Source: Bugula neritina | Lineage: Eukaryota > Animalia > Bryozoa | Length of the DNA stretch: 64,000 nucleotides | Assembly: GCA_964035545.1 (NCBI GenBank) | Contig: OZ037767.1 | Location: forward strand, 19,670,628-19,734,627 | Direction of reading: 5' to 3' | Shown: positions 36,672-64,000 of the stretch, piece by piece | Layout of the letters: every line of letters begins with the position of its first letter | Numbering within the stretch: the first letter of the stretch is position 1 | Program-made: the position numbers and the translations under genes | The notes under the pieces: generated by a model | The model's database searches: none | What the model was told of the DNA's origin: nothing | The model's input: the letters and a program-made list of their open reading frames with translations, nothing else

Positions 36672-36708
<37 letters not shown>

Positions 36709-42245: not shown

Positions 42246-43861
42246 ATTGAATGTAATTGTATGTAATTTCATTGATTTTTTAATTTTATATTCAATTATT
42301 TTCATTTTGTCATTTTAACATGAACAAGAGCTTAATTTTCATTTTATTTTTACTTTCCTTTTGATTTAGAATTATTGTAATGCAATCACACTGTTACACA
42401 CTACTGAATAAGATTTACTACAACCATTGTCATACTCATACGGATAATCATTGTTCTTGTGATTGTCAATGTTACTCAGAGTGCGATTATCATTATCATT
42501 ATCATTATAACTTATTTATAGGTAACCTTTTCAATGGTTCTACAAGCAGCTCTGAGTTTGTGATGAATGAGTGTAGGAATTTGAAGCTTTAAATTTAAAG
42601 TTGGGGACGTCCCTTAACACCTCAAACCTCCCAAATTTTTGCACTCATTTACCACCGACTGGCAGCTGCTTATAAAACTATTTATACTTTTTCGATATAT
42701 AAGTAATATAAGTTTTTCATTACGATTGTCACACAGAAGATCATCGACTATAACCATTTATTATAAGTCGTCACTTATTGAGATCGGACTATTGATCACA
42801 GGCTCACAGGCTTCCTTTAAGCCTGTTTTTAAAACACAAATGCGCTGATAGGTAATATGATCAATGTACATACAATGTTTTATTCTCAATTTATTATTTG
42901 CTTGGTCCTCAGGTTACAGAAGCTCTTTTTTGTGTGAGGCAAACCCATATGGGGGCACAATCATTCTACGGGCAGAGTGAACTTTACTTTTTTGTCTATA
43001 TGCAGCTCTAAGTTAGGGATATAACTGAATGCGGATTCTCAAATTTTGACTCAATATTGTATTCCAAGTATCGAAACTTCAACCCCTTGCACTCTTTCAG
43101 TTACTCCCGATTCCGAGCTGCTTATAGAATAATTCATTCGGAGATGATGCCATAGATTTCCACAACTCGCCATGTGGTAATACTAATACTAGGATTGTAA
43201 AGTACTAATGGCCATTATTCATTAGTGAATGAAGTTATTTATAAAAATGCTAAAGATTTTTGATTTTATAAAGTAGTTGTAAGTAGGATTACTGTTAAAA
43301 CAATGAAGAATATAATTATTATAAGGCATATATACCTAAGAAGTTTTGCTATTGCTTAGTTAGTTTTCCATTTTTTCGTAGCACTGGCTGCACTGTTTTC
43401 TTTTTCATGTAATTCAGTGTCAACTTTCGCGCACCAAGTCAAATTTAGCATTTTTTTTATTAGAGAGTTTGCTTTTTGGTTAAAGCCTTAAAGGTGTTAA
43501 AAGTTTTTAAAACCAAATTTTTCGAAATAATCTTGACAATAGTTATAGTCATATTGAATTTGATATTCATATTGGGTAATTATAATTTAAATTATACTTA
43601 TAGCAAGCCTTATTTTGTTGAAGTATTGCTATAACTATTTTAAGTAATTTTTATTATACCTAAAATAATTATCTATTCGCTCTGCTTTGCGTTTATAATA
43701 TTAAATGTAAAGCATCAATAGATTATCTTATTCTTGTGTAAGTTTCTGCAGGAACAGGTATTCTGGGGTTGTGTAGTTTGGAAGTCTGCGTCTCACTTTT
43801 CAGCTGCTCTCTTCTATGTCTATATCTTCTCTCTTCTATATCTATATCTTCTCTCAGATTT

Positions 43862-44844
43862 TCAATTTGTCTTCTGAGAGGCTCTATTTCGTCTCTCCTG
43901 TACTTTAGTGACTAGTTTGGGAGGGTTGGTCGGAATTTCAGAGAGCTCTGCCTTCACTGCTTCGATTATCATTATAGCTTGTTTTAGTGGCAAATTACTT
44001 ATTGAGTCTACCACTCGGCGTATAGGGTTTCTCAGTCCTTGGGTAAATTTGTCGAGTAGAAATTTGTTCCTGTGAATCTCACGGACATCAGCATATTCTG
44101 ATTGGCATGCTGCTGCTAATTCCACATAATACTCGCTTACGGTTCTTTTCTCTTACATAATGAATGATATTCAGATTTGGGCTTGCAATCTAGAGTGAAC
44201 AGTGAATATTTTTTGCAAGTCTTCTTTTAGTAGGATGTAATTTGTTGTGCAATTGACTTTTTTCGCAGATAAGGTCTTTAAAATTTCGTGAAAGCCGGTG
44301 TACGAAATGTCCTTGGTAAATATCATGCCTTTTGCTGTCGGTAAATTGGTAGGTTAAAATATGTGTTTCAAATCGGTCGATGAAGTTTTCCCAACTTTCA
44401 TTAGGTGCGCCTGAAAAGGTTTCATAATTTGAAAACTTCTGCTTGATGAAGGTCGGGGCTGGTGCGTAATGAGGGGGTTGTGTATGGGCAGTAATGGTGG
44501 CTTATGTTAAGCTGAGGCTCAGTTGGCATGGCAAGACCTGGCGGTGTTCTAGAAGTAACTGGAGGCGGTGAAAATAATGTGGCTGGCTGTATGGTATGAC
44601 TTACTAGTGGTGTTGTTGTAATTGATAAAGTATGGGTAGCGGTAGTAGTGTGGCTTACCACTTTCTGCCTAGTTCCAGTTCTAGCGTCCTTTTCCAAAAC
44701 CATTACTTTGTACCATTCAGGGAGTGAGTCCCAGAAGTCCATAACTTCCTTCACTTTATCACCATCTGCATCTTCATATGTTGTTGACCTAGCAGGTGTG
44801 GTAATCACATCAGTTGTTCTTTTAGATATTGCGTTGCTGGCCAT
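43862..44844 (-). mobile_element. Degenerate LTR-retrotransposon gag-like relic
   Basis: Frameshifted pieces FSGAPNESWENFIDRFE, ELAAAC and DKFTQGLRNPIRRVV are typical of Gypsy-like gag. Confidence 0.6.
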
Positions 44845-45298
44845 TCTAACTTTGGTTGTTGAAAATTAATTTGGCACCTAAATTTTATTTTGTTTTTATT
44901 TTTTACTTTTCGAATAATTTTATTATGCAATTACTGTGTGACTAATGCTCTGTTCTATAGTTATTCTGGTTTTATTGTTTAAATTGCTACCAATTATTTC
45001 TTATTTCACTGTTAATTTTCAGTTTAATTTTTATTACTTTTAATTCCCTTTTAAATAGTATCTTTCAACCTGCTCTGAAGCAAGTAATTTATCAGACCTG
45101 TGAAAAATTTTTGGTAAGTGCTCTGGGGTTGCATGAAAAGGCATTAAAAATAATAATCTTGAGCTACTTTATACCTATAAGATTTACGAAAAAGCAAATA
45201 TATGTGCATAGCTCTGGTTGTAGGCTCTTGAAACCATTGCTGATGCTAGTTTGTTTTCCTCGGCATATGCAAACTCTTAACGTCTAATCAAAGCAAGT

Positions 45299-46904
45299 TG
45301 TATTGTACTGTTGAGCAAGGTCTCGCCACAAAAATGGTTTTGGTACGGACTGAGAAGAAGTTTTAACAAATCTCTCACTTTTATTAATTTTCTTCTAAAT
45401 CATAAAAACTACAAGTAACATAAAGAATACATATAGGTGTGCTAAAACTCATACAATACAGTTGTTCAAATACCAGCAAACATCACGATATAATATTAAA
45501 TATAACAGCAATAAAAATTGTAATAAAAGACATAAAGCATTATCAAGTTAAAAATAGCAAAGAATAATAATAAAATACCTTTATTCTCTTGACGAGCTTG
45601 CTATAATATCTTCAAAATTTAGCTCTTTGTCACTTAACAAAATAAGTAGCTCAGCTTAGGCTACATGAGTGACTGTCTTTTTGGAGTTTCAATGCTGCCT
45701 TAAATACCAGGGCAATCACAAAGAAAAGGTAATTACATCTAAATTTAGCTATAATTAGGGTCAGCTAACTATGGGGCACATGTAATGACCTCATAAAGGA
45801 AGATGGATCAGTTCCTGTCAAACCCTAAAAGCTGACTTCAACAAAGGTGGCGGTTAGGCTTTACCTATTATTAGGCAGCTGACTGCTGCACAGGAGAATG
45901 AACTATCTAATAATAACAAATATCACCATTAAAAGCTAAAAATAAAAGTTCTAGTGGTATTTGTAACAAGGGCTATCATGCTTCTTTGTTAGATCCTTTA
46001 CACTCCCCCCTTTAATTTCACTCAGGGAAATTAACTAAACTGATTCAAAAAAATTAACTTTCGGTAGGTTCTAATTCATTTAGGGCACGTATCAAATTTA
46101 GGAGGGCCTAAACAAGAAGATTAGTTTTTGAATTGGCCTCTCAAGCTGTGTTTCTGATTTTATTCTTCTACCCTTTCTGTCTAACTTTTCTGCATCAGCT
46201 ATGCTAAGCCTAACTCTCCTAACTAAGTTGTCATCACTAGGAAATACTTCCACTACTCTGCCTAATGGCCAATCTCGCCTGTTTTTGTCATCACTAACTA
46301 AAAGTACTACATCTCCCACAGCAATGTTAGCAGCCCTTTTCAACCATTTTGGCCTGGATTGAATTTGTTGCAAATAATGAGTGCGCCAACGTTTCCAAAA
46401 TTGATTTACCAACCCTTGAACTACTCTCCAACGTTTTCTACAGTATACATCTTGTTCATCAAATTGACCAGGAGGAGGCAACACTACTTTGGACTTCATA
46501 GTTAATAGTTGGTTGGGAGTTAGTGGCATTGGGTAACTTTCATCTGTTTGAGATATTAGTGGCCTGCAGTTAACTATTGCCATTACCTCATATAATAAAG
46601 TCCGCAGTGTACTAGTATCTAGCCTTGTGCTGTTTATAGCTAGCATTGAGTTTAAGACAGACCTGATTGTTCTTATGTGGCGCTCCCAGACACCACCCAT
46701 GTGACTTGAGTGGGGAGTGTTTGTAACCCACTCGAAGCTATTACTTTCAGAAAAGCTTTCAATTTTTCTAGTTGCTTCTTTTGCAACACTTGCTAGCTCA
46801 TTAGCAGCACCTATAAAATTAGTTCCCCTATCAGTGTGTAATTGTCTGATGGGCCCTCTAATAGCTATGAAACAGCGCAATGCATTTATAAAGGCATCAG
46901 ATGT
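45299..46904 (-). mobile_element. BEL/Pao LTR retrotransposon 3' half: integrase core and C-terminus, PPT, 3' LTR
   Basis: TDRGTNF, GGVWER, FWKRWRTHYL, WPLGRVVEVFPSDDNLVR, RPIQKL; PPT GGGGGGAG (46010-46003) followed by the LTR start TGT at 46002; the distal LTR end is approximate. Confidence 0.88.
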
Positions 46905-48164
46905 TATCATTTCGGCTATTCCCCAATGAACGCGTTCAGGTGGAGGGTACACCAATGTATGCTGAACGCTTCCGTTGCTGAGTAGCTCTCGCCAAAATGG
47001 CAAAACATCTTTTTAGTGCAGGACCTTTTTTGAACACCTCCAGGAATCATTCATGACTTCTTTGGCTGTCTTCGTACAGTTATCTTTATAACTCTTTTGA
47101 AGCATCGCGTACTCACGGCGTTTCCGAAGCTTTCTGCTTAGCCTGCCAGAGATAACGTCTTCGGTGTTCTTCTGAAAGTTTTAGATGTTCTTTTGGCAGG
47201 AAACAACACCCTCTGCAATTGATCCACAGTCTAGCCTGTCGAGTCTCTCCTTCTTCCACTCTTTCTGGCCTATGGTGATGGGCCGTTCCTCTACTACTAT
47301 GCTGCTCACTCCCACAGTGTTAGCATCTCGAGCAAGTCTAGCATCATCAAGCATTTGGTTGAAGTCTTCATATCACAGTCTAGCTCTAATCCTTTCTGCT
47401 GATCTGTTTGGGTGCCTCACATGCAAAGCTCTATAGAGCTGAGCTTTAACTCGGTATGATAGCTCTAATTCTACCCAGTCGTGGGCTAAATCAACCAACT
47501 CGTTCTTTTCCAAAACAGATCGTTTCTTGCCCTCATCTTTAACCTCCTGCTCTCGCCCGGCTTTTTCGTGACACCACACCGTGTGCGCAGATCTCTGATG
47601 TTGTGAACATCCAATTTTGGAAGAATAACAGCTTGTACACTTTAGATAGCCGCAGAGCCACTTTGGCATGCACATGCGTACATGCGCAAGGTTCCCGTCA
47701 TCTCTTCCCCACACTCATCACACCGGCCCCGACGGTCAGGCCGAGCTTGCAAACTACTGGTTCCAGCTGCCTCTGACTGGAAGGCAGCTAAAAGCCGATG
47801 ACTTATATCATCACTATTAGCTTGTGTAACCAGTAAATAAGGCGACGCAAGGTGGGGTGTCAACCCACCTGCAGGGAGACACCTGCACTGTACAGGTGTC
47901 CCGTATTTGATTAACGTCTACACGCTTGGGCAGACGCTGGCTGGATTAGTAGTGTGGGCGACCACCTATCCGAAGATAAATGAAAGTGCTCTACTCCGGA
48001 GCCGAGTACATATGTCCCCTAATCCACACAAGTTTCTCCACGACGAGGGGCCGAGGCTTACCCCACAGTCAGCTGCAACTTCTGGCGTCTACGGCCAACA
48101 AGAACCCCAGCTGGCCAAGAGAGCTGTACCTCTCTACAAAGACGTTCCAGACAGATTAAGAGAG
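46895..48164 (-). mobile_element. R2-clade non-LTR retrotransposon family A, copy 1 (5' portion, degenerate)
   Basis: Visibly colinear with 54170-55490; zinc-finger and Myb-like region (HVRHPNRSAE). Confidence 0.85.
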
Positions 48165-49289
48165 CTATTGCTATTTCTAAATGCTGTTGACGCAGTTGTG
48201 TAAATTTTATTGAAATCCACACGACATTCTCTCTCCATCACTACTCATTTAAGTGCCAAAAGCGAAAAATTTCATAATGTTCACCCAAGTTTTTGAAAGT
48301 CAAAGAAGTTGGTGTTGAACTCTTATAGTAGACCTTTGTGGTTAAGCTAGCAAAATGCTGTTGAATATTCAATGTATGCCATTACTTAGCAAGTCGTCAA
48401 TTACTTATGAGTACACGATCAAGTTTGCACACATCATCGCGATGAAAAGTCACCACATATCTTTTTCTGACTTTAATATAGTTACTTCAATATAAATAGG
48501 TTTTTAGTTGACTTTTAGTGTCATGAAGATGATAGATGAACCATTTTTAAGGAGACTCTTTGAGGCATTGACCAATCCTCTCATCACTTTGTTGATGCTA
48601 ATTTGAAAATTAGCAATTTTATATTCATGAACTTTGATGCTTTCAAATAATCTAAGAACAACAATGCTGGTAGCTGTTATATTCCTATTAGTAAAAATAA
48701 AAACTTCATATTTATATTATGCAAGCCATAAAACAACTTTTATTCTGTTGGAGCTGTATCCGTGTACACTGATCCTGAAGGAATTAACATCTGGACTAGT
48801 TGCAAATATTGTCTTATTATATACTGATTTTATAAAGAATGGACATTTGGACTAATGCAAATATTTTCTCATTATACACTGATTTTGTAAAGAATGGGCA
48901 TCTGGACTAATGCAAGTATTTTCTCTGCCTGCTTAGCACCTATATTTGTTAGTTTCTTTTCTATGTTTATAGCACCAAAACAAACTACCCTCATTGTTAG
49001 GATCACTGTCGATATTTTTCATGAAGTCCCCAAAATGCTTTCATTGAGAAAATTTACCTTTTCAATCCCTTTTTTATCATGCTCTATAACTTAGAGATAC
49101 AGTACTAGTTGATATGGTTATACAAGGTGATCAAAAAGTTTATTGTGAAAAATATAATAAAAGTTGCATAATTTTTTAATGGGGCATTTCTTTCTCATTG
49201 TGATATTAGTCTGGGACACATTCATCCTAATGAGATGGAAATACTGTGCTATAAAAATATGCATTTACCAAGTTTACTTATATAAAATT

Positions 49290-50230
49290 GCAAGCATTCA
49301 TTTGTGGTAAGCTGCAAAACAGTTTTTGTACATTGGTTTGTCGCAGGTATCACAGATAGTGTTTATTCATGTCTCCTTTTTCTGCTCGGCACATAAACGA
49401 CAGTGTCTATGATTTGTATGTTGACCAGGTAAATTGGTCGGTGTTTCCATGATATTTGCCTTTTTGATAGCCTGCTTTTTTGCTCCTTCTTTTCATTGGT
49501 TTTCTGCTAACAAAGTTTTGGCCAACTCAGTGATAAATGATAGAAATGGTATTTTTGTCTGTGCAGGTCGGCATGCAGTACCCAAGTATTTACCTCACTA
49601 GCCATCAAAAGGCGAAAAAATAATTTCTTCCACCACTTCTTAGATTTTCTGTCAAGTTCATATATGCTTGCCATGTAATCACCTCTTTCAACACCTCTCA
49701 TTGTGATGCGATAGAAAACTTTTAGTTCTGATCACTAACACTTCCATCTTTCAACTTCTTTTTCACCAATCATTGCTATGACAGTTACTAAGTACAACTA
49801 TTTCTTTGATATCTCACCATTTACCTCCAATGACTCCATAGTCATTAGTTTAGAACAACGATTCACCGGGTCGAAGCTTGTCAGTCATAAACTTTGACAG
49901 GTTCTTACGGCCCATGTTACAGATAATCACAGCAGCAAATTGAACTGTGCACAGCAAAGCCATCACTACATTTGGTATCTCCTAATAGATCTTCACCATT
50001 TATACCATCGTCTCTCTCTTGATCATACACAGTCAGACTTTGCGTCACCTTGTATCCACATTTTGCTTCCTTTTTGACGGATTTCAGTAGTACGTATTGC
50101 TTGAGAGATAAACACCATATAAATTTGGTCATTGACTCATCAATAGATTAATATGTGCTATCTTCTCCGCAAAAAAGAAATTTACCTTTCAAGCATTGAA
50201 TCTTTTCATCAATGTAGTAGGCTGGGCATG
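49290..50230 (-). mobile_element. piggyBac-like transposase relic
   Basis: SIDESMTKF, LKQY, MRGVERGD (MGGVD-like), RKSKKWWKKLFF, and a C-terminal Cys-rich domain near 49300-49410; many stops and frameshifts. Confidence 0.85.
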
Positions 50231-50278
50231 CATGCTTCTGTGTTTCCGCCACAGTTTTGAAAGTTTTACCCCTTCACG

Positions 50279-52900
50279 TCTCCTTTTGGGCACCTTTTCA
50301 CCTCAGCTTGGCGTTGGGCTACGTGCTCAGCAAGCCCATTCCACCCTTGACAAAGAGCTTCATCTCACACAGGGTGCGCGATGCGAGAGCATAGCTGGGG
50401 ATAACCAACGCCCCACGCATATCCACATGCAGATGCGCCGGGTCTAGACCCCCAGAGTCTTCGGCTAATATCCTCCGTAGTTTGTCCACATGCGCCAGAT
50501 TAACCATCCACCTGACAGAGTGCGTAGTGACATGATGACAAAATCACGGTCCGTGAAACCTATCGCCCGCAGAAAACCCGCGCTTGCTAGGCTAACTGCT
50601 CCTCTCCAGTTGAGGGTTGTACTTCTAAATTGCCAGGTGGCCTCTTCGCACAATCCTCTGCACCAATGATGAATCTCCGGGCAGTCATAATACCTGATTT
50701 TTTCTTGATGGGCCCTATCGAGATCCCATCCATCTCCCGTGATGGCAACATCACACACAATTGCTTAGTCGCCCCTCCAAGCCACAAGATCAGGTTTGCG
50801 AAAAGTCTGATGGTAAGGGATGATTGGTTCCTCTAGCTTGGAGAAACCTAATCTGCGCAACCTTTCAGAGACATACTTGGCCACGTAGTTGTGCCGTTTG
50901 ATACGTGACCCATGTGAGCGAAAGCAAGTTTGCAGTACATGACCTCGTGTGGCCGTATAGTTTGGGCCACAGGTTGAACATTTGTCTGAGTGATCGCGAT
51001 CTATCCGATGCTTCCTGCTCGGCGTAACTACAAGGTTCGCTCTCAAGAGAGTTCCCCTTACATACTCTGCACCACTGACAAGTTCGACACTGTCGGGCAA
51101 GACCCAAGCATGAGTTTTTGGTACTAGGTTGTGGTGAATCAGGATACAACCATCCGCCGACTCATGGAGTTTTTCCTCCCAGCTTTTGACTCTAGGCGGC
51201 ACCCTTTGATCCAGGGCGCTCGACCTATTCAGAGATTGAACTCGACCCGAGCGTAGAAACGCATAATTGCGTTCTCCCCATCGACTTTCGTAAAGGAGCC
51301 AATGGGAAACACTATCCTCGTACCTCATGAACTGCCGAAGCCTTCTTTTGCGTAGTTCATGAATTTCATGAATTGCACTGGCAAAATGAATATGCACCTT
51401 CAACCATTTCTTACATTCTGCTCGCACTATATAATCTAGATGCGTCAGTACTTTTCCAGTTGGAGGCGATAAGATGAGTGCGTGATAGTGTTTAGGTATT
51501 TAAAAGGTTCTTAGTAAAAATAGCCTTTGTTGCGGCTTGAGGGGTGCTTTTGATAGTTTCTTTACAGATGACTCCAAACTCTTTGCGGGATTGGTCCCGA
51601 TGTTCAACGAACCTATCTGGACACCAAGGTACTTGTAGGTGTCTACGACACTTAACGCAGGTACCTTAGCACCAGTTAGCTCTAGAAAAGGTCTATCATC
51701 GCAAACCCATTTGCCATGCAATACCTTGATGTTTAATGTGGCGCATTTGACTGGATTAGCTATCAAACCAGCCATAGAGAATTGTTTTACCAACTCACAG
51801 TTTACCTGTAGGCCGGCACTGTCTTCACTCATGATGACGAGGTCGTCCGCAAAAGCCAAGAATTTGACCCTCTCCTCTCCCAACACATACCCAATGTCTT
51901 TCCTTAGTTTTTCAGTACAACAGTCCATGACAGCATTGAACAGATGCACTGAAATCGAATCCCCCTGCTTTATACCTCTTCTTGAACTAATCGGTTCTGA
52001 CAACTTCCCGTCCAGAACAATTCTAGTACTGCTAGCCTTATAAAAATTGTAGCAATACGTAATGAAATGATCTGGTACCCTAAGTCTTCTGCAGGAGGTC
52101 CACAGTGCATCGTGCCCAACGCTGTCGAAGGCCTTCCTCAAATCAATGAATGCAACTCTCAGGTTTTTCCCCTTCTTTTTTGCGTCCGTAATGCATCTCT
52201 GAAGAATCAGAGCGTTCATGAATATTCCATCTCCCTTACGGAATCCTTTTTGCCTCTGTGAGATAGGCAAGAGTCGCTCTAGCCTATTTCCCAGAATGCT
52301 GTGGAACAACCTAGTGAAAACCGAACACACAGTAATGGGTCTGTATTCACTAGGGTCCTGTGTACCCACAACCTTTGGAACCAGAATTGTCCTACCTTCA
52401 CATATAGTTGATGGCGTTTTTCCACACAGGAGCCACAGATTAAAGAACGAGGCTAGTTCCTCAGCTTTGGTGTTATTCTTCAATTTTTTTCATGTAAACC
52501 CGTCTGGTCCTGGTGCTCCCTTGTTCTTGACTGCAAGCGCTTGTTCTATTTCTTGGGCTACTATCGGCGCCAGTAGCTCGTTTAGTTGTGGATGCTGTTC
52601 ACTACATCTAGGCATAGTTTCATCAGGGGGTCCCCTCCCTAGAAGCCCCTCCCAATACGCTTCTGCGCCTTCCGGTAGACACCCTTTGCTCTGCCCTAGT
52701 GTACCCAACAAAATTTGGTCCACTAGTCTTCCTGGATCTTTTCTAAATAGTTGTTGTGCCTTTCTATACATTCTTCTACGTGTCTGGTTTTTACTAACCG
52801 GCATTCCCTCTGGGATGTTCTTCTTGTTCGTTTGTTGCTTCAGGGGGGAAACCTCCTGATGAAAGTTCTGTCTAGATACTCCTGTGTAAGTTCAAGTGGT
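50279..52900 (-). mobile_element. R2-clade non-LTR retrotransposon family B (RT, CCHC, restriction-like endonuclease, 3' UTR), degenerate
   Basis: APGPDG, YRPIT, DLRKAFDSV, GIKQGD, FADD, YKYLG; CSTC...HVLQTC, RHN, RKPDLV...D...K; stops and frameshifts present. Confidence 0.92.
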
Positions 52901-52979
52901 AGGTAATTTTCATTACCGGATATGTGGGTCTCATTGATCGCTTCCTTCAGGGCTTTTCTATAATCTCCTTGCTCATCGT

Positions 52980-55490
52980 GGGAAGGTAACCACCTCGACA
53001 CAGCTCTCCGCACCTAAACATCTAGTCTCACGAGTAGGCTTTTTGTAGGATCCCCCAAGACAAGGCTGTGAGTGAGCCTTGGCAGCAGATGCGTTCTAAG
53101 GATCTTCATGCGTTGCTGAGGTTCAAGTTGGTCAGAAGAAATATTCTGCAACCACTTCGTGACGGATTCGGTACAAGCACTATACAGCTCTCTCCTCTCA
53201 TCACGCCTAGAAGTACCGACACGAATGCCAAGGTACTTATAGATCTCCCCAGCAGCGAGCAATGGTATGGCTTGATCCTTGACGCTGAGAATGGATGGAT
53301 GAACCACCCACCTCCTGCCGGCTTTTCGCTTATGGACATGAATGTCCACAGTGGCGCACTTCTTTGGGTTCACCTCCATACCTACCCTCCTGAGATGCTC
53401 GGTGTACGCAGTAAGAAGCCTCTGCAAATTCCGTAAGTTCTCAGCAAGAAGAACTACGTCGTCTGCAAAAGCCATGTGGTTTACTCTGACTTCCCTGTTT
53501 AACTCAACTCCCAGGGAAGAGTCTAGTTTCTTGACACAGCTGTCAATGACAAGATTGAACAAGAAACAACTGAGAGGGTCACCCTGCCTAACACCCTGTC
53601 GTAGCTGGATCGGATCGAAGATCTCGTGTCCAACACGCAAGCGTGTTCGCCACCCTGAGTAGAGATCACGTAGGTTATCGACTAGGGGAGCAGGGACACC
53701 CGCACTAGGCAAGACGTTGAAGATTGAAGCATGATTCACAGTCAAACGCCTTTTTTCAACATCCACATAGCAAACACTAAGAGGGCGCAACTTAGCTGGA
53801 TTAGTGCGCTCTCTAATGATTTCTTGTAGTAGAGAAACATTGGTACCCACACCATCACCTGGCCTAAAGCCCCTTTGCATTTCGGAGATCGGAACAAAGT
53901 TCTCGAATCTCCAAGCCAATATCCTGTGGTAGAGTCTGGTGAGACAGCTAGTGACAGTAATGGGCCGGAAGGCTGCCGGGTCATTTTCACCCTGTACCTT
54001 AGGTATCAGCGTAGTAAGCCTCTCCTGTAATGCTGTTGGCGCACGCGCCACAGCCATCCAGATGTTGAACAAACAGGCTAGGCGCTCACTGGCAACCCGT
54101 TGACCTGACTCTAGGACAGCCTGTCAAGACCCGCTACGCCCCTAACTCCTCTGAGAGCTCGTGTAACTTCATCAGATGTAATCATTTCAGCTATTTCCCA
54201 ATGAACGCGTTCAGGCGGAGGGTACACCAATGTATCCTGAACGCTTCCTTTGCTGAGCAACTCCCGCCAAATTGGCAAAACGTCGTTGAGTGCAGGGCCT
54301 TTCGTTGAACACCTCCAGGTATCATCCATGACTTCTTTGATTGTCTTGCTACAGTCATCTTTATAACTCTTTCCGTTTAGCCCCTCCAGAGATACTGTCT
54401 TCGGTGTTCGTTTGAAATTTTGACGTGTTGTCTTTGCAGAAAACAACACCCTCTGCAAGAAATCCACAGCACCCTGTGAATCGTTCTCAAGTTGAGGCCA
54501 GGTGGTTTGGGCATCAATCTTGCCATTAGTCCACTCAGCTAGGAACTCGAGGTCTAGCCTATCGAGTCTCTCACTCTTCCACTCATTCTGGCCTACGGTG
54601 ATGGGCCTGTCTTCTACTATGCTACTCGCTCCCACAGAGTTAGTATTCCTTGCAAGCCTAGCATCATTAAGCATTTGGTTGAAGATGTCATACCTTGCTC
54701 TTGCTCTAATCGCTTCTGCGGATCTGTTTGGGTGCCTCACATGCAAAGCTCTGTACAGCTGTGCTTTGACTGGGTATGCTAGTTCTAATTCTACCCAGTC
54801 ATGGGCTAAATAGACTAATTCGTCCCTTTTCTAAACAGTCCGGTTCTTGCCCTCTTCTACAACCTCCTGCTCTCGCTCAACTTTCCGAAAATACCACTCC
54901 GTGTGCGCGCTTCTCTGATGTTGTGAACATCCTACTTGGGAAGGATAGCGGTTTGTCCACTCTTGATATCCGCACAGCCACTTGGGCACGCAAGCACATG
55001 AGTACATGCGCGAGGTTCCCGCTTTCTCTTCCCCACACTCATCGCACCGGCCCCGATGCTCAAGCCGAGCACGAGAACTACTGATTCCGGTCGCCCCTGA
55101 CTGGGGGCAATCAAAAGCCGACGACTTAAATTATCATCTCTGTGTGCTTTGGAAACCAGTAAATAAGGCGACGCAAAGCGGGGTGTCAACCCACCTGCGG
55201 GGAGACACCTGCACTGCACAGGTGTCCCGTATTTGTTCAACGTCTACACCCTTGGGCAGACGCTGGCTGGATTAGTAGTGTGGGCGACCACCTATCTGAG
55301 GATAGATGGAAGTACTCTATTACGGAGTTGGGCACATATGTCCCCTGATCCACACGAGTCTCTCCACGACGAGGGGCCGAGGCTTACCCCTAAAGACAGC
55401 CGCGATGCCTGGCGTCTACGGCCACCAGGAATCCCGGCTGGCGCAAAGAGCTGTGCCTCTCTACTAAGACGTTCCAGACAGGTTAAGAGA
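52980..55490 (-). mobile_element. R2-clade non-LTR retrotransposon family A, copy 2 (5' UTR, ZF/Myb, RT; 3'-truncated)
   Basis: FRPIT, QRGF, GVRQGDPLS, FADD, YKYLG, PQQR in ORF 53014-54072; N-terminal zinc-finger and Myb pieces upstream. Confidence 0.92.
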
Positions 55491-55504
55491 TAACTGCTAC
55501 AACT

Positions 55505-55728
55505 ATGTCTGGAAGAGGTAAAGGAGGCAAAGGACTTGGAAAAGGAGATCTGCTAAGAGGCAAAAAAAGGTGTTGCGTGATAACATCCAAGGTATCACTA
55601 AACCTGCAATCCGTCTTGCAAGAGGCGGTGTGAAAAAAATCTCTGGACTAATCTACGAAGAAACCAGAGGTGTACTCAAAGTATTCCTTGAGAATGTCAT
55701 CAGAGATGCTGTGACCTACACTGAGCAC
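55505..55728 (+). pseudogene. H4: Histone H4 pseudogene (frameshift, two codon deletions, 3'-truncated)
   Basis: [14 protein letters not shown], then frameshift, then [53 protein letters not shown]. Confidence 0.95.
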
Positions 55729-56035
55729 TGGCAATAAGAAAAAGAAGAGGAAAAGGAAAGAAAGCTATGGAATCTATATTTATAAAGTCTTGAAGCAGGT
55801 GCACCCTGACACTGGTGTCTCCAGCAAGGCAATGTCTACCATGAACAGTTTCGTCAATGATGTGTTCGAAAAAATTGCTGATAAAGCATCAAGACTTGCT
55901 CATTACAATAAAAGATCCCCGATTACCAGCCGGGAAGTGCAGACCGCAGTGAGGTTAATCCTCCCAGGAGAATTAGCCAAGCACGCTGTATCTGCGGGTA
56001 CAAAGGCAGTCACCAAATACACCAGCTCCAAGTAG
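55727..56035 (+). pseudogene. H2B: Histone H2B pseudogene (5'-truncated, fused to H4)
   Basis: [28 protein letters not shown]...AVTKYTSSK*; no start codon, several substitutions at normally invariant sites, no 3' stem-loop. Confidence 0.95.
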
Positions 56036-56062
56036 ACGTCTTGAGTCCCTGATTCATACCCC

Positions 56063-56333
56063 ATGTAAATTTGGTCATTGACTCATCAATAGATTGATAT
56101 GTGCTATCTTTTCCGCAAATAAGAAATTCACCTTTCAAGCATTGCATCTTTTCATCAATGTAGTAGGCTGGGCATGCATGCCTGTGTTTCCGCCACAGTT
56201 TTGAAAGTTGTACCCCTTCACTCGTGTCAAACAAGCTGTAATTAGTTTTGTATAAATTGAATCGTTTAAGCCAATCAGTGAATAAGTCTAGTTTAGAGTA
56301 GTCAAATTTAGTTGAAAGCTGCAACTGAAACAT
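56063..56333 (-). mobile_element. Chimeric relic: gag-like N-terminus joined to a duplicated piggyBac fragment
   Basis: FDYSKLDLFTDWLKRF resembles a Gypsy gag start; 56063-56221 repeats 50123-50278 (DSTYQSIDESMTKF). Confidence 0.7.
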
Positions 56334-56747
56334 TTTTAGTGATGTATAAAATGTTGGATGTCAATTAAGTGCAATAAATATTCTCAAATAGACTAATATA
56401 TTTTTTCTTTATGATGAAATGGCTGCCACCACGTTGTTAGTTTATGTTTAATAATGCTAGCTCCGCAGCATATTACTAAACATAACAAAGCAGTAATATG
56501 ATTTCAATAAGATGCTTCAAAATACATAGCTCAAATATTACATGAGTAGCAGTAATAATGTAATGACTTAAAGCTTTTGTTAGTTCAAAAGTCAAATGTA
56601 GTTGTAGCTGTGTATTGTAATCTTCAAAAACAATTGCTAAAAAAAATTGAGCCCTAAAGACTATATCCACATGTTCAACCTTATATTTCCTATTGATATA
56701 TTTTTTCTTCAGTTTTCTATATTTTTTTCCAATTTTGGTTGAATACT

Positions 56748-57990
56748 CCCCCCCCCCCCCCAAGATACTGTGATCGAGTCTGATGAGAACAGATCCCACT
56801 GTGATGGGTCTGAAATGACTCGGGTCAGTAGTACCTAGGACTATCGGAATAAGAGTTGTCTTTTCACAAATCCTGGATGGACAGAACCACAATACAGCCA
56901 TCAGTTAAAAAGATATGCGAGTTTTTTAGTTTGTCCATTATCATCCGCCATGTTGGGGCATCCTGTCCCAGTACCCCACTACTCTTCCGGGAGAAGTATT
57001 TGACAACCTCCTCTTCCGAGATGGGGCCCATAAGACAGTCCAGCCTGTCGTGGGGATCCTCATACTCTGGCACATTGACTGGAGATTTCCTCCTCAACAG
57101 CTTAGTCCGGAACTCATCTGCACCTGCAGGTATAGTTACTTTGAAATCAAAGTCCTCCTGCAAAATGCCATTCATAAGACGCTTGTGGTCTCAGCACAAT
57201 TTCCTCTGTACTCTTTTGAAGAAACGTCGACGTCTGCGATAACTCGTATGAGTCTTCGAGAGAGCCGCAAGGTCTTCATCGTGCCTGGTGGTAACACCCG
57301 AACTGGTCCTTTGAACTGCCGGGAAGAGCCTCTCCAGTGATGTGTCGAGCACACTTTGGTCGATGATGATACTTTCATTTGAAATTTCTCTCCCAAAATT
57401 GAGAGACAGTCAACGTGCTTTATGATCGTATTCAGCTCTTCATTGGTTAAGGGAATATGTAAGGCTTCTACAGATTACGTTTCAGGTATATTTTCCATTC
57501 TGTCGTATTCCTCAGCCAGAAGCTGAGAATATCTTGCTTTCTCATTACGCTGACCCTTGATGGATTCCAAACTATATTCAGGAAGACACTTTAGGAGCTC
57601 CTGGTTTATATACCTTACTCCTTGCTGTTTTAACCTAACTTCTTCCCTAACCAATCTGATAAACATTCCATCATCCTATCTGATCTTTCTCGCTTCCCTT
57701 TCAGCCTCTTCTTGGTGGTATTTTTCTTCATGTGCTCTTTTTAAATGGTGAGATAGTCTGCCTAATGTTCTGTACACCGTGCCGCATGAGGTGCATTGAT
57801 GGAAATTGCAAATCTGACGAATCCATGATCGATCAGATTCCCATCCCACATACTTAGGAACTTCGAAAAAGCTCGCGTTTGTTTTCCTTTCATTCCTGGT
57901 GTCACAGTTTGCGTTGCCACACCGCTTTAGTGTACACACACCTGCGTCATCAGAAGTAAAAGCCCCTGTAAGGGTTTCGTTACACCTTTT
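56748..57990 (-). mobile_element. R2-clade element family C, 5' fragment (C2H2 finger, Myb, start of RT)
   Basis: CTSCGTVYRTLGRLSHHLKRAH; INQELL...SLESIKGQR; HFRPITVGSVLIRL; ends in a G-run. Confidence 0.85.
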
Positions 57991-58649
57991 TTTTGGATCA
58001 TATCTTCTGGATTGAGAAAACCTTCAGTTTAAAAAAGAAAGATAAAGCAAACTGTGGTAATGCATTATTAGGTGCTAGAAAAAGGCCAGCGTTACCGACT
58101 CTCACCACAAGGAGGTTGCGCATTAAAAGAGTGTTTACCCTTTGTTAATCCGTAAAAACTGTAGCGACAAAACATGATATATACGTCCAGCAGAACCAGC
58201 ATCTAAGTGACTAACAAATATAAAAAAAATCCTAATATTACATTTCAAAGTAATTAGCATAATTCAAAAACATAGTGTTCACATTAATAGTAGAATTATA
58301 CATAGCCATTAATGGACACATACCTCTGTGTTCGCACTATGAGATGCAGATAACTATATTATTCGTTAAACTTACTATATATCTTCTTTTACAAATCCGT
58401 GTATAAAAAACTACATGCTATTGACTAGTAATAACTTTCAACTGCCTTACTTGTATAAGTATATTAACCTGATGCCATTATGTTATGATACAGCCACAAA
58501 TATGATGCAATGATGATGCAATACGCTATGGCCATGCACAAGTATGATACCACTGTCAGCAGAAAGTAAACAAGGGTATTTTTACTATTAAATTGAAAGA
58601 TAAAAGCATAAAAATGTTATAGGTGGTTTTTAATATGGTAAAATTTATT

Positions 58650-60130
58650 CATATTTTTAAGTAGCCCTAGGTGAACTGTTTGAGAAGCCATGCATGTAAC
58701 AAGTAATCTCCATCTTTTTCTTTCAGTTCTTCCATCTTTGACAGTAAATGGTCCGAAACAATCCCGGCCTAAAAATTGAATGGTGGTGCTAGTTCTGTTA
58801 TGTCAGCAGGTAACCGTGTCATTTGCTGTTCACATCTGCCACGTTGTTTCTTGCATATAGCACAGTATTAAATCACAGAAGCTATTAATCTGTGGGCACC
58901 AATAAGCCAATGTCTAGCTGTTCTCAACTTGAAGAGTTTTAAACTTCTGCTTTTATGAGCAACTTTGTCATGGTAATAGCCAATCAGAAGTTTTGAGACA
59001 TGAGTGTGCTTGGGCAAAGTGACTGGATGCTTTTTCGAGAAATTCAACATACTCTTTTGATGTCTACCACCTACTCTAACAATATCATTTTCGTTGATTG
59101 GATCAAGGTGAAAAATCGAACTTTGTTTACTTACCTGCTTGCCTTTTGTTAGTCGGTAAGTTTCTGTTGAAAAATTTTCATGCTGTACACACTTCAAATC
59201 ATCCGTCATATTGACCAGTTGTATTATGGAATCTTTCCACTTTGATGTGTAGCTTGTGTGATACTTTTTTTCACAATTTTAGAAGCATGCATGTTTTGAT
59301 TTGGCTCAGTAAATTCTTAATTTTGAAATTTTGTTTTTTGTGATTCAGGTTGTCCAGAAGATTGATAATGCTTTGCTGCGGTTTTCCTCAGCTCTTTCAG
59401 TTTTATTGGACTGTCAGAATGCGTTGATGTTAGGTGTTCTTTATGGCATAACTTGCATTGCCTTCGAGTATGACATTTTTTAGACATGTGACTGGTAGCA
59501 CTTCTAGCATAGTCTATTCTACTTTACATTTTGTGTTCGCTCCTCATATGTCTGCGAACGAAACTTTCTACACATGCTTATATCATATTTAGGCGTTTTG
59601 CGGTACAAGTCCCATGTTTGTTTACTGTTTGGTGGACTTTTACTGACACTGGTGAGAAAGGTGTGTCGACTGTTGCGCTTTGATGTGTTTTCTTGAGCTT
59701 GTGATCGATCTGACGATTTGCTTACAATCTTTTTGCTGTTAATCTGCTGGTAAATTGGTTCAAATAGTAGCTCAGCTTCTGATTCCACAAACTGCGCAAA
59801 CTCGCTGGAGGTTGGGTACCTCGCTTTTTTCTTTTTACAGTAAAAACAATGCCTGCCCATTTTCTTTGTGTATGGCAGTTTGTGGTCTAGCTTTTCATTT
59901 CGCATTTTCACAATCTCAATTTCCATTCTCAAAATTGCAGCTTTATGAGGTGTGAGTTTTTTAAGCATTTCCCAACACTTCTACCAAAATAATCATGTTT
60001 GCCATTTTCATCTGCTGCTAATAATTGATCTATTTTTTATTGTGTCTTTTTTTGGCTGCTGTCTGCTTTGTATCACTTTATCAGTGGTCTCAATTTCTTG
60101 TAAGATATTCTCTGGCGGCGTAATGTCATC
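58650..60130 (-). mobile_element. BEL/Pao retrotransposon 5' relics (gag with zinc knuckles, internal deletion, integrase N-terminus)
   Basis: EFAQFVESEA, CRKF, CKLCHKEH; LDP...VRVGGR...KHPVTLPK, DCFGPF, TCMASQTVHL. Confidence 0.85.
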
Positions 60131-60464
60131 TATACTACTACAAAATACATGACTTGATCTGTATTAAAACATTCTCTAATTTTAAAGTTTTTTTTTTAAA
60201 TTCAGTTAGTTAGCTTAAGGTTAAACAAACCTTTCTGCACTACTCTTGTTATCCATAAAGCTGAGCAATTGAAAGAAATGCCATTTTTGAGGTTCAATTG
60301 GACTGGAGCCACTGGGTGATTTTAGTTGTTCTCTTTTCAATCCTGTGAGTGTCCCGTCGGTTTCGATACTTCAGAGAACATGCTTCTTCTAAATATAATG
60401 AAAGTCAAAAAGTAAACTTGAAAAGTGGTAGATTAAGTATCTGATTACAATAGACATAATTAAT

Positions 60465-60620
60465 TCATTGAACTGACCAACTATCATCTAATAAATCTCC
60501 CATTTCTTTGCTAACGTCTTTCCAATTGTTTTCTTTTACAGTTTTGTGCATATAATATTTATGGTTTTTATCCCACAAGCATGGTCTTTTCCTGACATGA
60601 AATGCAAACAAAATTAATAT
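60465..60620 (-). mobile_element. MADF/Myb-SANT fragment, possibly from a PIF/Harbinger element
   Basis: VRKRPCLWDKNHKYYMHKTVKENNWKDVSKEMG fits the MADF pattern; isolated, with no intact gene structure. Confidence 0.6.
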
Positions 60621-61449
60621 AAAATGATGAATTGAACCATTATTACATATCAGATGATGTGCAGCACTGACCAATACTCAATTTGGCTGCAAACAGTATC
60701 AGTATCACTATGAGTATGCCCTTGTGATTCAGTTTGACATTGTCAATAAATGAATAATTGAATCTGAAAGTGAAAGATTGACTTTGAGTGAAGGACAAAG
60801 TGAAATTGACAAAAAAATTGAAGGAGTGCCATTTTGTTTTCATCACAAGTTGTATAAAAATTGTAAAAAAATACTCACTGCATTAATCCATTTTTCTGTC
60901 TATAAAATATTGTTTACATCAATGCGACTATTTTTACTTTCAAATGGCAGGACCATACACAGAAAGTAAAAAACTTACACAGCTAGAAGTATTGCTTTTT
61001 AAATATTACTTGCTATACAATAAACAATGCGCAATTTAATGGAACAATGCAGCAAGTTAGGAAAAATGGGCTTGCTAAGTAACTACCAGCCAATTAGGTA
61101 AGGACGACAGAAAAATATTCGCACCTGTCGTTCAGCATTTTCAACACATGAAATTCGCGTACAGTAAATTCCTTTTTCTACGTGTGCAAATTTTTGCCTA
61201 CGAGTATGAAAATACGTTAAAAAAACTTCATACGCCATACCCTTCATGGATCAGTCCCGTGGCCTTAATACTTGCACCTGTCTTTCAATTTCTTTTTCTT
61301 GGACAGGGTAATGGCGATATGGTGTCTGTTAAAGGAGTCAAGTCCCTAAAACTAGAGGGGTTTCATGTTTTAATAGGACTGTTCGACCTAAGTCATATTT
61401 GTGGGTGCTTAAAACCTCTTGTTGTTGCCTCAACATTTGTGTAGCTGCT

Positions 61450-63017
61450 TGTTTTTCTTGCGGAGATTCAATGGACTCCACAGTACAGCCTCTGGAATTT
61501 TGGAATTGTGACTGGCTCTGTTGTATGATAAAGCATCCACACAGATCTTTGGTTGCTGTAGGGGATGGTATAGTGCACTGGCAATTACCACTCTATCAAT
61601 GTAGGCTTTTTTACTCTAAAAAGGCGTGTTGACGATTCCATGGCTGAACTATGCAGGCCTCCACAAGACTTTCTGCACCGGGTGACAGGATTGTAGCATG
61701 TTTAGCCTGCATGTTGGCATAGAAAGGCTGACGTCCTTTATTACAACAACTTATGGTTTGCTCTTCCATCCCAAACAAGCAGTTAGAGAAATCTATGTGA
61801 CAGTGAAATTGTTTGAAGAAGTTGAGACTTAGTAGTATCTGGTTGTCTAGATTGGCTACCAGGAACTGATAAGTACAGACAGTGGAAACCAATTTAAAGG
61901 TGAGGCGTGTGGTACACTGGCAGTCTGACACTTTTTCCATCTGCAAGTGTGCAATACCCTGTTGTGGAAATAAGGGGCGTACGACAGTGGTCGGCTATTT
62001 GACATATCACTGATTTTTGTACGATTGACTGTGCACCCACTGTCAAGTAACAGAACCTCATCTCGGGCCCCAATCTTGACTGGAACATAATATGCGGTTC
62101 TTTGATTGGTTAAACTGACATGTGTTTGACCCATAGGATTTGATTCGGTAGTGACTGGGTTATTCAATGTCAAACTAGTTCGTTTCCCTGTCTAGATTGA
62201 GCACATCGCAGCGTAGCAGGTAACTGGCATTGCCGCTGTTCTAGTGTCGGCTTTGTACCGAAACAGTTGACAAGGTCAGTTTCTCCAGCATGGCCCTTTA
62301 GTTTCCATTAATTTATGCATCATCATATTTTCCTGTGTCATGTATTGGTCCAGTCAGGCTTCTAACTCAGCCATGCTGTCATTCCTCACTTGGCGCACCC
62401 TGGGTGTGTTTGACTGTACTTAGGAAAATTTGGTTGATGATGCCAATGGTGGCTTCCACAGTCCCCAGTGTACGATTATTTAGTTCCCAGCCTAATATTT
62501 GATACTCATGAGGTAATGCACTTATCAGCTCTTTAATAGTAGGCTTCTCCCTACCATCACCTCCTAGTTTCGGGATGGCCATCTGGATTAGTCTTTTTAG
62601 ATAGCTTGCAAATTCATGTATGTTTTCTTTTAAGTTCTAGCTGACTTGCTGCAGTAGCTGACTGGCTCCTGGCTCTGTGAGTTGATACTTTGTTTAAAGT
62701 TCACAAGCACGATGAGTGTAAGTACCCTCTAGCAATCCTTGCTTTGCTGCACTAGTCACAGCCATATCAACTGTAGCTTGGTTTCTGCATCTTCCCAGCC
62801 ATTAACAACTCGGACCTGTTCGAACCTATATAAGAACTCATCCACATTAGTAGTGCCATCAAATGACGGGGGTGGTAGGCCAATCTGTTGGTAAAGTACA
62901 GCAGCAGCCTCCTGTGCCATGTCTCGAATTCTTGCAGCGGCCTCACGAAGAGCTTCCTCTGCCATCTTTAAAGTAGGTTATCTAGTATTGCTCTAGAAAG
63001 ATCCCACTGTTGCCACC
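61450..63017 (-). mobile_element. Gypsy/Ty3 LTR retrotransposon 5' part (PBS, gag, protease), degenerate
   Basis: PBS TGGTGGCAACAGTGGGAT (63017-63001, tRNA-Leu-like); gag PPSFDG...FLYRFE...NGWED from ATG 62965; protease LLDSGCT. The 5' LTR presumably lies above 63018. Confidence 0.85.
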
Positions 63018-64000
63018 AGTAAAGTAAATTTGTATTTGACACCAGGTGTCACTATTGACGGTAAGCAATGTCACTTTAAAAATTGGTTAAAATTATGGTG
63101 TGCAGAAACCTAATTGAACTATCTAATACTGATTGTTTTCAACTATTAGTGTGCTTTTTTTAATTAATTTAGTGACTAGAATTGATTTCTGGTGTTCGGT
63201 AACAGTGCTCGATTGTGACAGTGACACCACTATGGCTCACCAATTTATATCACAGAAACTGTAGTCAGAGACAGTGACAGAAATCAGGTTCCTGGTATTT
63301 CGATCACAAATATTCAACTAGAATTGCAGCGCAAACAATCACCACTGACATTTTATAGGAACTAACTACCACTATAGTAATAGCAATAGTAACCTAATCA
63401 AGAGCTAAGTATTTCACAAATAATAAAGCTTATTGTAAGTCGATTATAAACATTACAACAGGCACGAACAATTCATAAATTTTGAATTTGAAAATTGAAA
63501 ATTTGAATTTAACATAAAATTATTATGGAGACTTGCATCAACCAATCACAATATATCAAAACTAGTTGGCCTAGTTTTATTTCAGTTTATTGTATTGTCA
63601 AATTAATTTAACTTGCTAGTAACGATCAATATTTCCTTGACCTAGTCTCTATCTTCACAGCAGTCTTTTTCGCAACGTGTACTGCTCGATAGCTGTAATA
63701 CTATTTTTACTACATTGTATAAGTATGCTAGCGTGATGCTATTACGAAAAGTATAACTTGGAATTTTTGGATATAACTGCAGTGTAAAACTGGATAAGTT
63801 ATAGATCGCATTGAAGTGTAAAATACATTTTCATTGACATTGAATACTTTTTGTGATGCTTTTGTATCTTTATAAAATTTAATTTTGTTAATTCTTACTG
63901 GTGTTTTGGTAGTCTACACATAATATATAAGCAGCAGCTGCTTATAGTAGGCTGGAAATATACATTTTATTATTTAATATTATGAAGCTATTATTTCAGA

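Follow-up and report, generated by a model that had tools for sequence, protein, structure and literature searches.

Do the broken transposons that lie side by side in an intergenic region of the Bugula neritina genome, all facing the same way, mark a locus that produces piRNAs? Within the window (the whole 64,000-nucleotide stretch of DNA that was analyzed), they form a discrete heap of 19.5 kb at 43,622–63,076 (C3:19,714,249–19,733,703), ∼5 kb upstream of a minus-strand ClC chloride-channel gene (table 1). The initial annotation recognized this heap but set its limits at 43862–63017, which we corrected.

Composition of the Heap

The heap consists of approximately ten broken transposons of at least nine families (LTR/gag, two BEL/Pao, three R2-clade, piggyBac, a MADF-bearing repeat, and a Gypsy-type gag). 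Identities of the relics were set by comparison with intact copies elsewhere in the same genome (loci L012–L020 in table 1) and range from about 66% to 99% relative to nearest relatives. These comparisons bear out the initial view that the pieces are all truncated and that they include two gag relics (43.9–44.9 kb and 61.3–62.6 kb), two piggyBac pieces, one MADF piece, and one Gypsy-type gag. Two other assignments changed in part. There are two BEL pieces, but instead of being halves of one element they derive from separate BEL/Pao elements: one shares 99% identity with an intact copy, and the other is an old integrase relic. Three R2-clade families are present as proposed, but in five stretches rather than four, with 51,373–52,987 being a patch inside another.

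The ClC gene was identified from motifs because ten long ORF pieces from the left flank had no match in Pfam. Its N-terminal exons are at 37.9–38.5 kb, which rules out that the heap is a ClC intron.

Table 1. Parts of the transposon heap and the neighboring gene, with positions in the window
Feature	Position	Strand	State	Relatives and matches
LTR piece (43622–43838) and gag relic (gagA) of an LTR retrotransposon	43622..45057	−	internally deleted, 5′ side truncated	89–91% DNA identity to L017, whose 215-bp LTRs flank a gag ORF with Retrotrans_gag and zf-CCHC; gag on minus at 43892–44865 (tblastn)
Young BEL/Pao fragment: 3′ LTR (about 755 bp) and C-terminal end of integrase	45303..46900	−		99% identity to intact L012 copy (1984-aa ORF: Peptidase_A17, DUF1759, DUF5641) and to 8 or more further copies; rve and DUF5641 on minus at 46101–47012 (Pfam)
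R2-clade family X, second older copy (X′)	46895..48163	−	5′ part only; abuts BEL break point	77–83% identity to window 54170–55490, 85% to L014; Xn ORF, minus 47253–47917
piggyBac relic	49049..50277	−		71% DNA identity to L018; DDE_Tnp_1_7 C-terminal end, minus 49510–49731, E 4.6e-5, above Pfam's cut-off
R2-clade family X, 3′ part (thumb/linker/endonuclease region)	50274..51367	−		94% identity to sister heap C3:20027267–20028363
R2a patch: 1.6 kb of a young R2 family in place of 78 bp of X	51373..52987	−		97.6% identity to L013 (747-aa ORF); RVT_1, E 1.7e-30
R2-clade family X, 5′ part (N-terminal region and RT)	52986..55490	−		RVT_1, E 3.2e-24; 92% identity to L014; 88% to sister heap C3:20028441–20030483, there contiguous with the 3′ part
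Host histone fragment: H4 residues about 13–76 joined directly to H2B residues about 22–125	55490..56064	+		H4 E 2e-29, H2B E 8e-54 (PDB phmmer); Pfam Histone; 84–92% DNA identity to histone arrays on C9 and C5
Direct copy of 50112–50277 (piggyBac end and 56 bp)	56058..56221	.	same orientation	94% over 166 bp
R2-clade family R2b	56731..58108	−	N-terminal zinc-finger region only	weak C2H2 match; 60–64% aa identity to ORF upstream of RT on L019 (tblastn); DNA identity 72% to L019, 71% to sister heap
Dispersed non-coding repeat	58137..58649	. (orientation not definable)	without coding signal	79% identity to L020 and other copies
Second, old BEL/Pao relic (integrase and probably upstream pol)	58647..59980	−		35–37% aa identity to BEL pol residues 1533–1717 (tblastn); 153-aa piece 59522–59980 weakly matches 930-aa and 1909-aa multicopy TE ORFs
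MADF-bearing dispersed repeat	60069..61216	−		79% identity to at least 5 copies on C8; MADF_DNA_bdg, minus 60468–60677, E 3.3e-9
Gypsy-type gag/protease relic	61266..63076	−		81–85% identity to L015 (zf-CCHC gag beside Gypsy pol); on minus at 61266–62627 (tblastn)
ClC chloride-channel gene, 5′ half (context)	35895..38532	−	N-terminal exons end near 38.5 kb	motifs on minus: GSGIPE (36920), a ten-residue motif (35901), and an 11-residue helix-B stretch

Orientation and Its Limits

Both strands of 43.5–63.3 kb were scanned alike against Pfam, each represented by 83 stop-to-stop pieces that were 45 aa or longer. The minus strand yielded RVT_1 (twice), rve, DUF5641, MADF, DDE_Tnp_1_7, and C2H2, and the plus strand yielded Histone/CBFD only. 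All TE domain matches and tblastn blocks in the heap are on the minus strand, in agreement with the initial annotation and with the one-strand arrangement of a uni-strand cluster. The accompanying claim, that host histones are the only plus-strand coding relics, holds in that the histone is the sole Pfam match on that strand; the relic can now be specified as an H4(13–76)–H2B(22–125) fusion fragment. Plus-strand TE genes overlooked by Pfam were considered and rejected. Both ORFs tested (2/2; 61079–61441 and 44961–45284) overlap little with the TE coding relics of the minus strand. Their matches are confined to short, interrupted frames in further copies of repeats, and they are spurious.

Most of the insertions are independent, and they come from unrelated classes (LTR, BEL, non-LTR R2, piggyBac, and MADF repeat). 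With approximately nine independent oriented insertions, the probability that all face the same way is 2^-8 = 0.004; if R2 relics attract one another, there are seven and the probability is 2^-6 (0.016). The R2a piece was left out of these counts because it is homology-guided. These probabilities precede any look-elsewhere correction, and with about 3,400 windows scanned, 0.004–0.016 is not compelling for a single locus picked from among them. Tandem duplication inside the heap was rejected, the only duplications seen being the 166-bp duplicate and the diverged second copy of the 5′ part of X. The two copies of the duplicate (50112–50277 and 56058–56221) flank the block of X plus histone and resemble a long target-site duplication.

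The strand bias ends with the heap. Whether it continued past 64 kb had been raised with the initial annotation, and it does not: the next element, at window-equivalent 65.1–71.7 kb, is a very young DNA transposon that carries its ORF on the plus strand, and TEs further out are dispersed and of mixed orientation. In the searched part of the interval from 63.1 to about 65.1 kb (positions past 64,000), neither a TE-protein relic nor an own-genome repeat was found. To the left, 41.5–42.3 kb is a (TTAGTA)n-type minisatellite common genome-wide amid otherwise unique DNA, and no promoter at 41–43 kb is recognizable from sequence alone. Depletion of poly(A) signals, an indirect sign of a long transcript, is not seen on the plus strand, where AATAAA occurs 12 times versus 8.7 expected.

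R2-Clade Relics and a Sister Heap

Families X, R2a, and R2b have the architecture of the R2 clade, homologous to R2Bm, in which N-terminal zinc fingers precede the RT and a C-terminal linker/zinc-knuckle/restriction-like endonuclease region follows it. The intact R2a ORF on L013 matches the R2Bm structure 8gh6 (residues 307–998, E 9e-99; phmmer) and the window piece 50768–51499, in the 3′ part of X, matches its residues 850–1001 (E 5e-13); the N-terminal region of R2b gives a weak C2H2 signal. None of the three families shows the site-specific insertion into 28S rDNA that characterizes R2, and searches of this heap, its sister, and the intact copies yielded no rRNA match with E ≤ 0.1. The heap also lacks the 18-bp repeat flanking the intact R2a copy, and family X has no shared target site because its 3′ flanks differ completely between the two heaps. 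On these grounds we dismissed a common target of the R2 relics, be it rDNA or another sequence. Genome-wide, R2-clade copies are mostly in four clusters, each internally co-oriented, and three of roughly four R2a pieces with >93% identity are in the two heaps on C3.

The 3′ junction of the R2a piece is in frame and at the homologous position, and its 5′ junction has microhomology. Judging from these junctions, the piece is a homology-guided patch in a resident X relic. Part of the co-orientation in the heap is thus forced by homology, which counts against a piRNA-based interpretation.

The sister heap is 290 kb downstream (C3:20.009–20.039 Mb) and spans ∼30 kb. In it, 10/10 TE blocks are on the minus strand, two Gypsy relics among them, and the sole coding sequence on the plus strand is an intact 650-aa ankyrin-repeat ORF. 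The two heaps are alike in chromosome, in polarity, and in having only non-TE coding sequence on the plus strand, and they share families X (88–94% identity), R2a (96–98%), and R2b (about 70%). The sister heap differs in being larger and more R2-dominated and in holding the ankyrin-repeat ORF. Segmental duplication was rejected as the source of both, as their X copies differ in flanks and 5′ truncation points.

A Candidate piRNA Source Locus and Its Alternatives

We suggest, with a probability of roughly 40%, that the heap is a strand-selected transposon trap and a candidate uni-strand piRNA source locus. Under this model, the intergenic region would have acquired and retained insertions of numerous TE families over an extended period, with insertions persisting only when their sense strand is the minus strand. 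The plus strand would be transcribed as one long precursor, the best-known process for such a layout, from a putative promoter between ClC and 43.6 kb; such a transcript would run antisense to all of the TEs and be processed into piRNAs. The layout has the prerequisites of a uni-strand cluster and partly supports the piRNA interpretation. Two pieces are 98–99% identical to intact copies elsewhere in the genome and represent families still active there (BEL, 99%, with an intact 1984-aa ORF; R2a, 97.6%, with a 747-aa open frame). Piwi-domain loci number at least seven in this genome (AGO and PIWI clades counted together), and lophotrochozoans including bryozoans have two PIWI paralogues, PIWI1 and PIWI2 (PMC11114477). 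A literature search found no bryozoan small-RNA library.

Similarity to known clusters is partial. Like flamenco and flam-like clusters, the heap is a discrete locus adjoining a unique gene, draws its fragments from many TE families with nearly all of them on a single strand, combines relics of old families with fragments of recently active ones, and has a sense-oriented insertion only at its presumed distal end. The label "flamenco-like" given in the initial annotation nevertheless fails on size, because the heap at 19.5 kb is ten- to fifty-fold smaller than those clusters, which span hundreds of kb (180–1,085 kb), and on Gypsy/ERV dominance (PMC10643416). Strand bias and content of flam-like clusters are driven by Gypsy-family ERVs (PMC10643416), whereas the heap is mainly R2-clade non-LTR, BEL/Pao, piggyBac, and LTR/gag, with one Gypsy-type gag relic and no env-bearing ERV. 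Drosophila uni-strand clusters tolerate sense insertions at the 3′ side (PMC10643416). The lone sense-oriented TE near the heap is very young and at its presumed 3′ side. Molluscs belong to the lophotrochozoans, the nearest group with a demonstrated piRNA pathway including ping-pong, which makes PIWI-based TE defense plausible in this genome; mollusc piRNA clusters were reportedly defined from small-RNA data by Jehn et al. in 2018 (cited in PMC11114477). Flamenco belongs to another phylum, and whereas the mollusc clusters rest on small-RNA data, the heap is known here from the layout of its DNA.

Alternatively, the heap could be an ordinary TE graveyard, a gene-poor gap that tolerates nested insertions and whose orientation has no strand function and reflects chance, R2 homology events, and selective reporting from a genome-wide scan. 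We consider this somewhat unlikely. Only seven to nine samples of orientation are independent, with the uncorrected probabilities given above; three to four relics belong to the R2 clade and might not count as separate events, and the R2a piece is a homology-guided patch. The end of the bias at the heap, with the next TE on the plus strand, and the missing transcript features (AATAAA depletion and a promoter at 41.5–42.3 kb) are likewise as expected of a graveyard. Agreement of unrelated classes (two LTR/gag, two BEL, piggyBac, and MADF) with the R2 relics argues against it, as does the sister heap, where every block including both Gypsy relics is on that same strand.

Selection and insertion could each also produce one-strand heaps in other ways. 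TEs inside transcription units are well known to be biased toward the antisense orientation, and the heap may lie inside or be read through by a plus-strand host or lncRNA unit (e.g., a long first intron or 5′ region), from which purifying selection would have removed sense insertions because they bring polyadenylation and splice signals, with no dedicated piRNA production. The intact ankyrin-repeat ORF on the plus strand amid minus-strand relics of the sister heap, and the plus-strand location of non-TE relics in the window heap, are consistent with such a unit. But no plus-strand host exon was found beside the heap (piece 40644–40940 has no family match), the first plus-strand ORF to the right belongs to a transposon, and the nearest recognized host piece in that direction, an SDR at about 82 kb, is on the minus strand; we regard a host unit as improbable. 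It shades into the piRNA model because piRNA production can be triggered by TE insertions that lie antisense in host transcripts (PMC13226689). Still less probable is that the mechanism of insertion sets orientation, whereby R2-clade elements or their cDNA would home to a resident R2-like or oriented target, or replication direction would bias target-primed insertion, yielding head-to-tail growth without selection. The four co-oriented clusters in which nearly all R2-clade copies outside single loci are found, the concentration of R2a pieces of >93% identity in the two C3 heaps, and the homologous, in-frame R2a junction fit this mechanism, whereas the wholly different 3′ flanks of X, the lack of an rRNA or other common target, and the absence of the 18-bp repeat do not. 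Moreover, BEL, LTR/gag, Gypsy, and piggyBac agree in strand with the R2 relics, and such integrase- or transposase-driven elements are not known to prefer a strand.

The trap model and patching could also be combined. The one-strand heaps of the genome, as working piRNA source loci and the first in Bryozoa, would then also grow by homology-guided patching, without ordinary transposition. cDNA or RNA of an active R2 lineage would repair a break in a resident R2 relic and become fixed in the orientation of the relic. Such patching would explain why nearly all non-rDNA R2 sequence is in co-oriented heaps, though we view the combination as a long shot.

Without piRNA production, the heap would be no more than an ordinary TE graveyard, and the recurrent strand polarity in this genome would need another explanation. 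The R2a patch hints at a second route by which such loci could take up sequence of active elements. Should the heap produce piRNAs, the uni-strand design, whose best-known example is Drosophila flamenco, would extend to a lophotrochozoan whose TE content (R2, BEL/Pao, and piggyBac) differs, and with this heap and its sister loci a bryozoan would have its piRNA source loci mapped for the first time.

Composition and extent of the heap

The heap, a 19.5-kb set of truncated transposable element (TE) relics upstream of the minus-strand ClC chloride-channel gene, was mapped with DNA searches of its own genome (216 Mb of assembly) and by comparison with nine fetched exemplar loci, after classification of their intact ORFs. 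Both strands of 43.5–63.3 kb were also divided at stop codons, keeping pieces of 45 aa or more (83 per strand), and all pieces were subjected to the same Pfam scan. TE domains are on the minus strand only (RVT_1 twice, rve, DUF5641, MADF_DNA_bdg, DDE_Tnp_1_7, and C2H2 fingers) and the sole match on the plus strand is to Histone/CBFD, as expected from the initial annotation, which described the relics as confined to one strand. Its inventory of elements was accurate overall, but the two BEL pieces belong to different elements and the R2-clade stretches number five, from three families (X, R2a, and R2b). The R2a ORF and the C-terminal piece of X match the Bombyx R2 structure 8gh6 (E values of 9e-99 and 5e-13, respectively); as judged by homology, the R2 identity of both is firm. 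The two plus-strand ORFs that overlap little with the TE coding relics of the minus strand have matches only to short, interrupted frames in other copies of the repeats and thus are not genes.

Features of the heap, the adjacent transposon, and R2-clade clusters in the genome (plain positions are within the window)
Feature	Position	Strand	Remarks
LTR and gag relic	43,622–45,057	minus	89–91% identity to locus L017
BEL/Pao 3' LTR and integrase end	45,303–46,900	minus	99% identity to intact copy with 1984-aa ORF
R2-clade family X, 5' fragment	46,895–48,163	minus	older copy, X'
piggyBac relic	49,049–50,277	minus	
R2-clade family X	50,274–51,367 and 52,986–55,490	minus	single copy split by R2a
R2a, piece of young R2 family	51,373–52,987	minus	97.6% identity to copy with open 747-aa frame
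Histone H4(13–76)–H2B(22–125) fragment	55,490–56,064	plus	
Direct copy of 50,112–50,277	56,058–56,221	not definable	94% identity
R2b (third R2 family), N-terminal zinc-finger region	56,731–58,108	minus	
Non-coding dispersed repeat	58,137–58,649	not definable	
Second BEL/Pao relic	58,647–59,980	minus	old
MADF-bearing repeat	60,069–61,216	minus	
Gypsy-type gag relic	61,266–63,076	minus	
6.6-kb DNA transposon	65,111–71,732 (window-equivalent; L001:1111–7732)	plus (ORF)	1462-aa ORF; ~635-bp terminal inverted repeats
R2-clade cluster	C3:19.72 Mb		heap
R2-clade cluster	C3:20.01–20.04 Mb		sister heap
R2-clade cluster	C8:5.170–5.180 Mb		
R2-clade cluster	C9:1.731–1.747 Mb		

The minus-strand ClC motifs and N-terminal exons extend no farther than about 38.5 kb, which places the heap in intergenic DNA, ∼5 kb upstream of the gene; a location inside a ClC intron was rejected. 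The 41.5–42.3 kb segment (41,555–42,257), within the region initially suggested as the start of a plus-strand precursor, is an AT-rich (TTAGTA)n-like minisatellite that is found at many loci and matches itself on both strands; the remainder of 39.5–43.6 kb is unique sequence.

The heap ends at 63.1 kb; in assembly coordinates it spans C3:19,714,249–19,733,703. In the 110 kb fetched and examined beyond the window, the strand bias is no longer seen past 64 kb, a check that the initial annotation had proposed: the next transposon ORF, that of the 6.6-kb element, is on the plus strand and is followed farther right by isolated full-length Gypsy elements only, of mixed orientation (plus at 100–106 kb, minus at 121–127 kb and 147–150 kb). 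The bias is thus a property of the heap itself. The 6.6-kb transposon is very young, with dozens of copies, dozens of internally deleted derivatives, and 100% and 99% identity to copies on C82, C9, and C1. Its single ORF has no Pfam or PDB match and has distant homologues (25–51% identity), including in Exaiptasia and Pinctada, some with PF03638 or PF20231.

Junctions and independent insertions

Where the window copy of family X carries R2a, the copy in the sister locus is uninterrupted. In the junction alignment, 1.6 kb of R2a stands in place of 78 bp of X (51,367–51,373; 52,986–52,987), with a 3' junction at the homologous, in-frame position and a 5' junction at a short microhomology. Judged from these junctions, the R2a patch is a homology-guided event; its orientation was consequently forced and we left it out of orientation samples. 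Because the piece is without its 3' end, target-primed insertion seems a less likely origin of the patch than repair of a break with R2a cDNA or RNA as template.

The 166-bp direct duplication (50,112–50,277; 56,058–56,221) brackets the R2-X and H4-H2B block in the manner of a long target-site duplication, and a separate piggyBac insertion was rejected as the source of the second copy on this account. The arrangement suggests that X and the histone block are one insertion with an unusually long target-site duplication, in which histone DNA was captured at the 5' junction in the opposite orientation. X' is 77–83% identical to X and is thus more distant from it than is a copy on another chromosome (92%), so X' was counted as a separate insertion.

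A sister heap and the distribution of R2-clade elements

Several pieces of the heap have matches, in identical orientation, ∼290 kb downstream at C3:20,009,000–20,039,400, a second R2-rich heap. All 10 TE blocks of this sister heap identified with the TE protein set of this analysis, eight R2-clade and two Gypsy, are on the minus strand. A Pfam scan of plus-strand pieces found no TE domains, and this strand has only an intact 650-aa ankyrin-repeat ORF (L010:4524–6473, corresponding to C3:20,034,524–20,036,473). The X copies of the two heaps have a common 3' end, but their flanks are unrelated and their 5' truncations differ, indicating independent insertions; segmental duplication as the source of both heaps was rejected.

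Genome-wide, R2-clade matches are outside rDNA and mostly in four clusters, each co-oriented internally, and no rRNA or other common target of the copies was found. Only one R2a copy, on L013 (C9:315,6xx–318,6xx), has a long open frame, and it is bordered by the same 18-bp tandem repeat (GGTTACACCACAGAGCAT-like) on both sides (L013:3635–3722 and 6536–6632). Neither the window nor any of the other 25 fetched loci has this repeat, which may represent either a minisatellite targeted by R2a or a repeat at the termini of the element. L013 also has a 335-bp near-perfect, MITE-like palindrome (3151–3485) that is present in the left gene region of the window (15,611–16,033); its sub-threshold matches to miRNA hairpin models (mir-218, 40 bits vs. 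a cut-off of 62) are most likely due to chance, from its hairpin shape.

Explanations for the one-strand layout

The tally of independent oriented insertions is ∼9, all minus (P = 2^-8 = 0.004), or seven if R2 relics attract one another (P = 0.016), but because the locus was picked from ∼3,400 windows, the orientation P alone does not exclude chance, and a graveyard without function, co-oriented through chance, homology, and reporting bias, is a possible if doubtful explanation. Insertion-mechanism bias centred on R2 is very unlikely, as full co-orientation spans integrase-, transposase-, and TPRT-driven elements and recurs at a second locus, a combination hard to explain by mechanism of insertion. 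Selection around a plus-strand transcript, in contrast, would yield the one-strand layout. Such selection could be of an ordinary kind that removes sense insertions inside a plus-strand host or lncRNA unit. We regard this as improbable, although the ankyrin gene of the sister heap is a reason to retain it. This explanation grades into a piRNA cluster, as piRNA production can be triggered by antisense insertions within host transcripts (PMC13226689).

The best-known case of selection around such a transcript is the uni-strand piRNA cluster (PMC10643416), and the heap is a plausible candidate for one. The label "flamenco-like" given initially does not hold, because the heap falls short of flamenco in size and is without its Gypsy/ERV dominance. 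Depletion of AATAAA on the plus strand of the heap was not seen, and a literature search found no bryozoan small-RNA data. Piwi-domain loci number at least seven in the genome, and two PIWI paralogues are reported for bryozoans (PMC11114477). Four tandem loci with Piwi-domain exons are within 43 kb at C2:12,874,000–12,917,000, which suggests a local expansion of an Argonaute/PIWI gene.

This analysis adds a junction-level tally of independent events, an end to the bias at the heap, a link to a sister heap, and a homology-guided R2a patch. Judging from its layout, the heap in Bugula neritina may function in the manner of a small uni-strand cluster.
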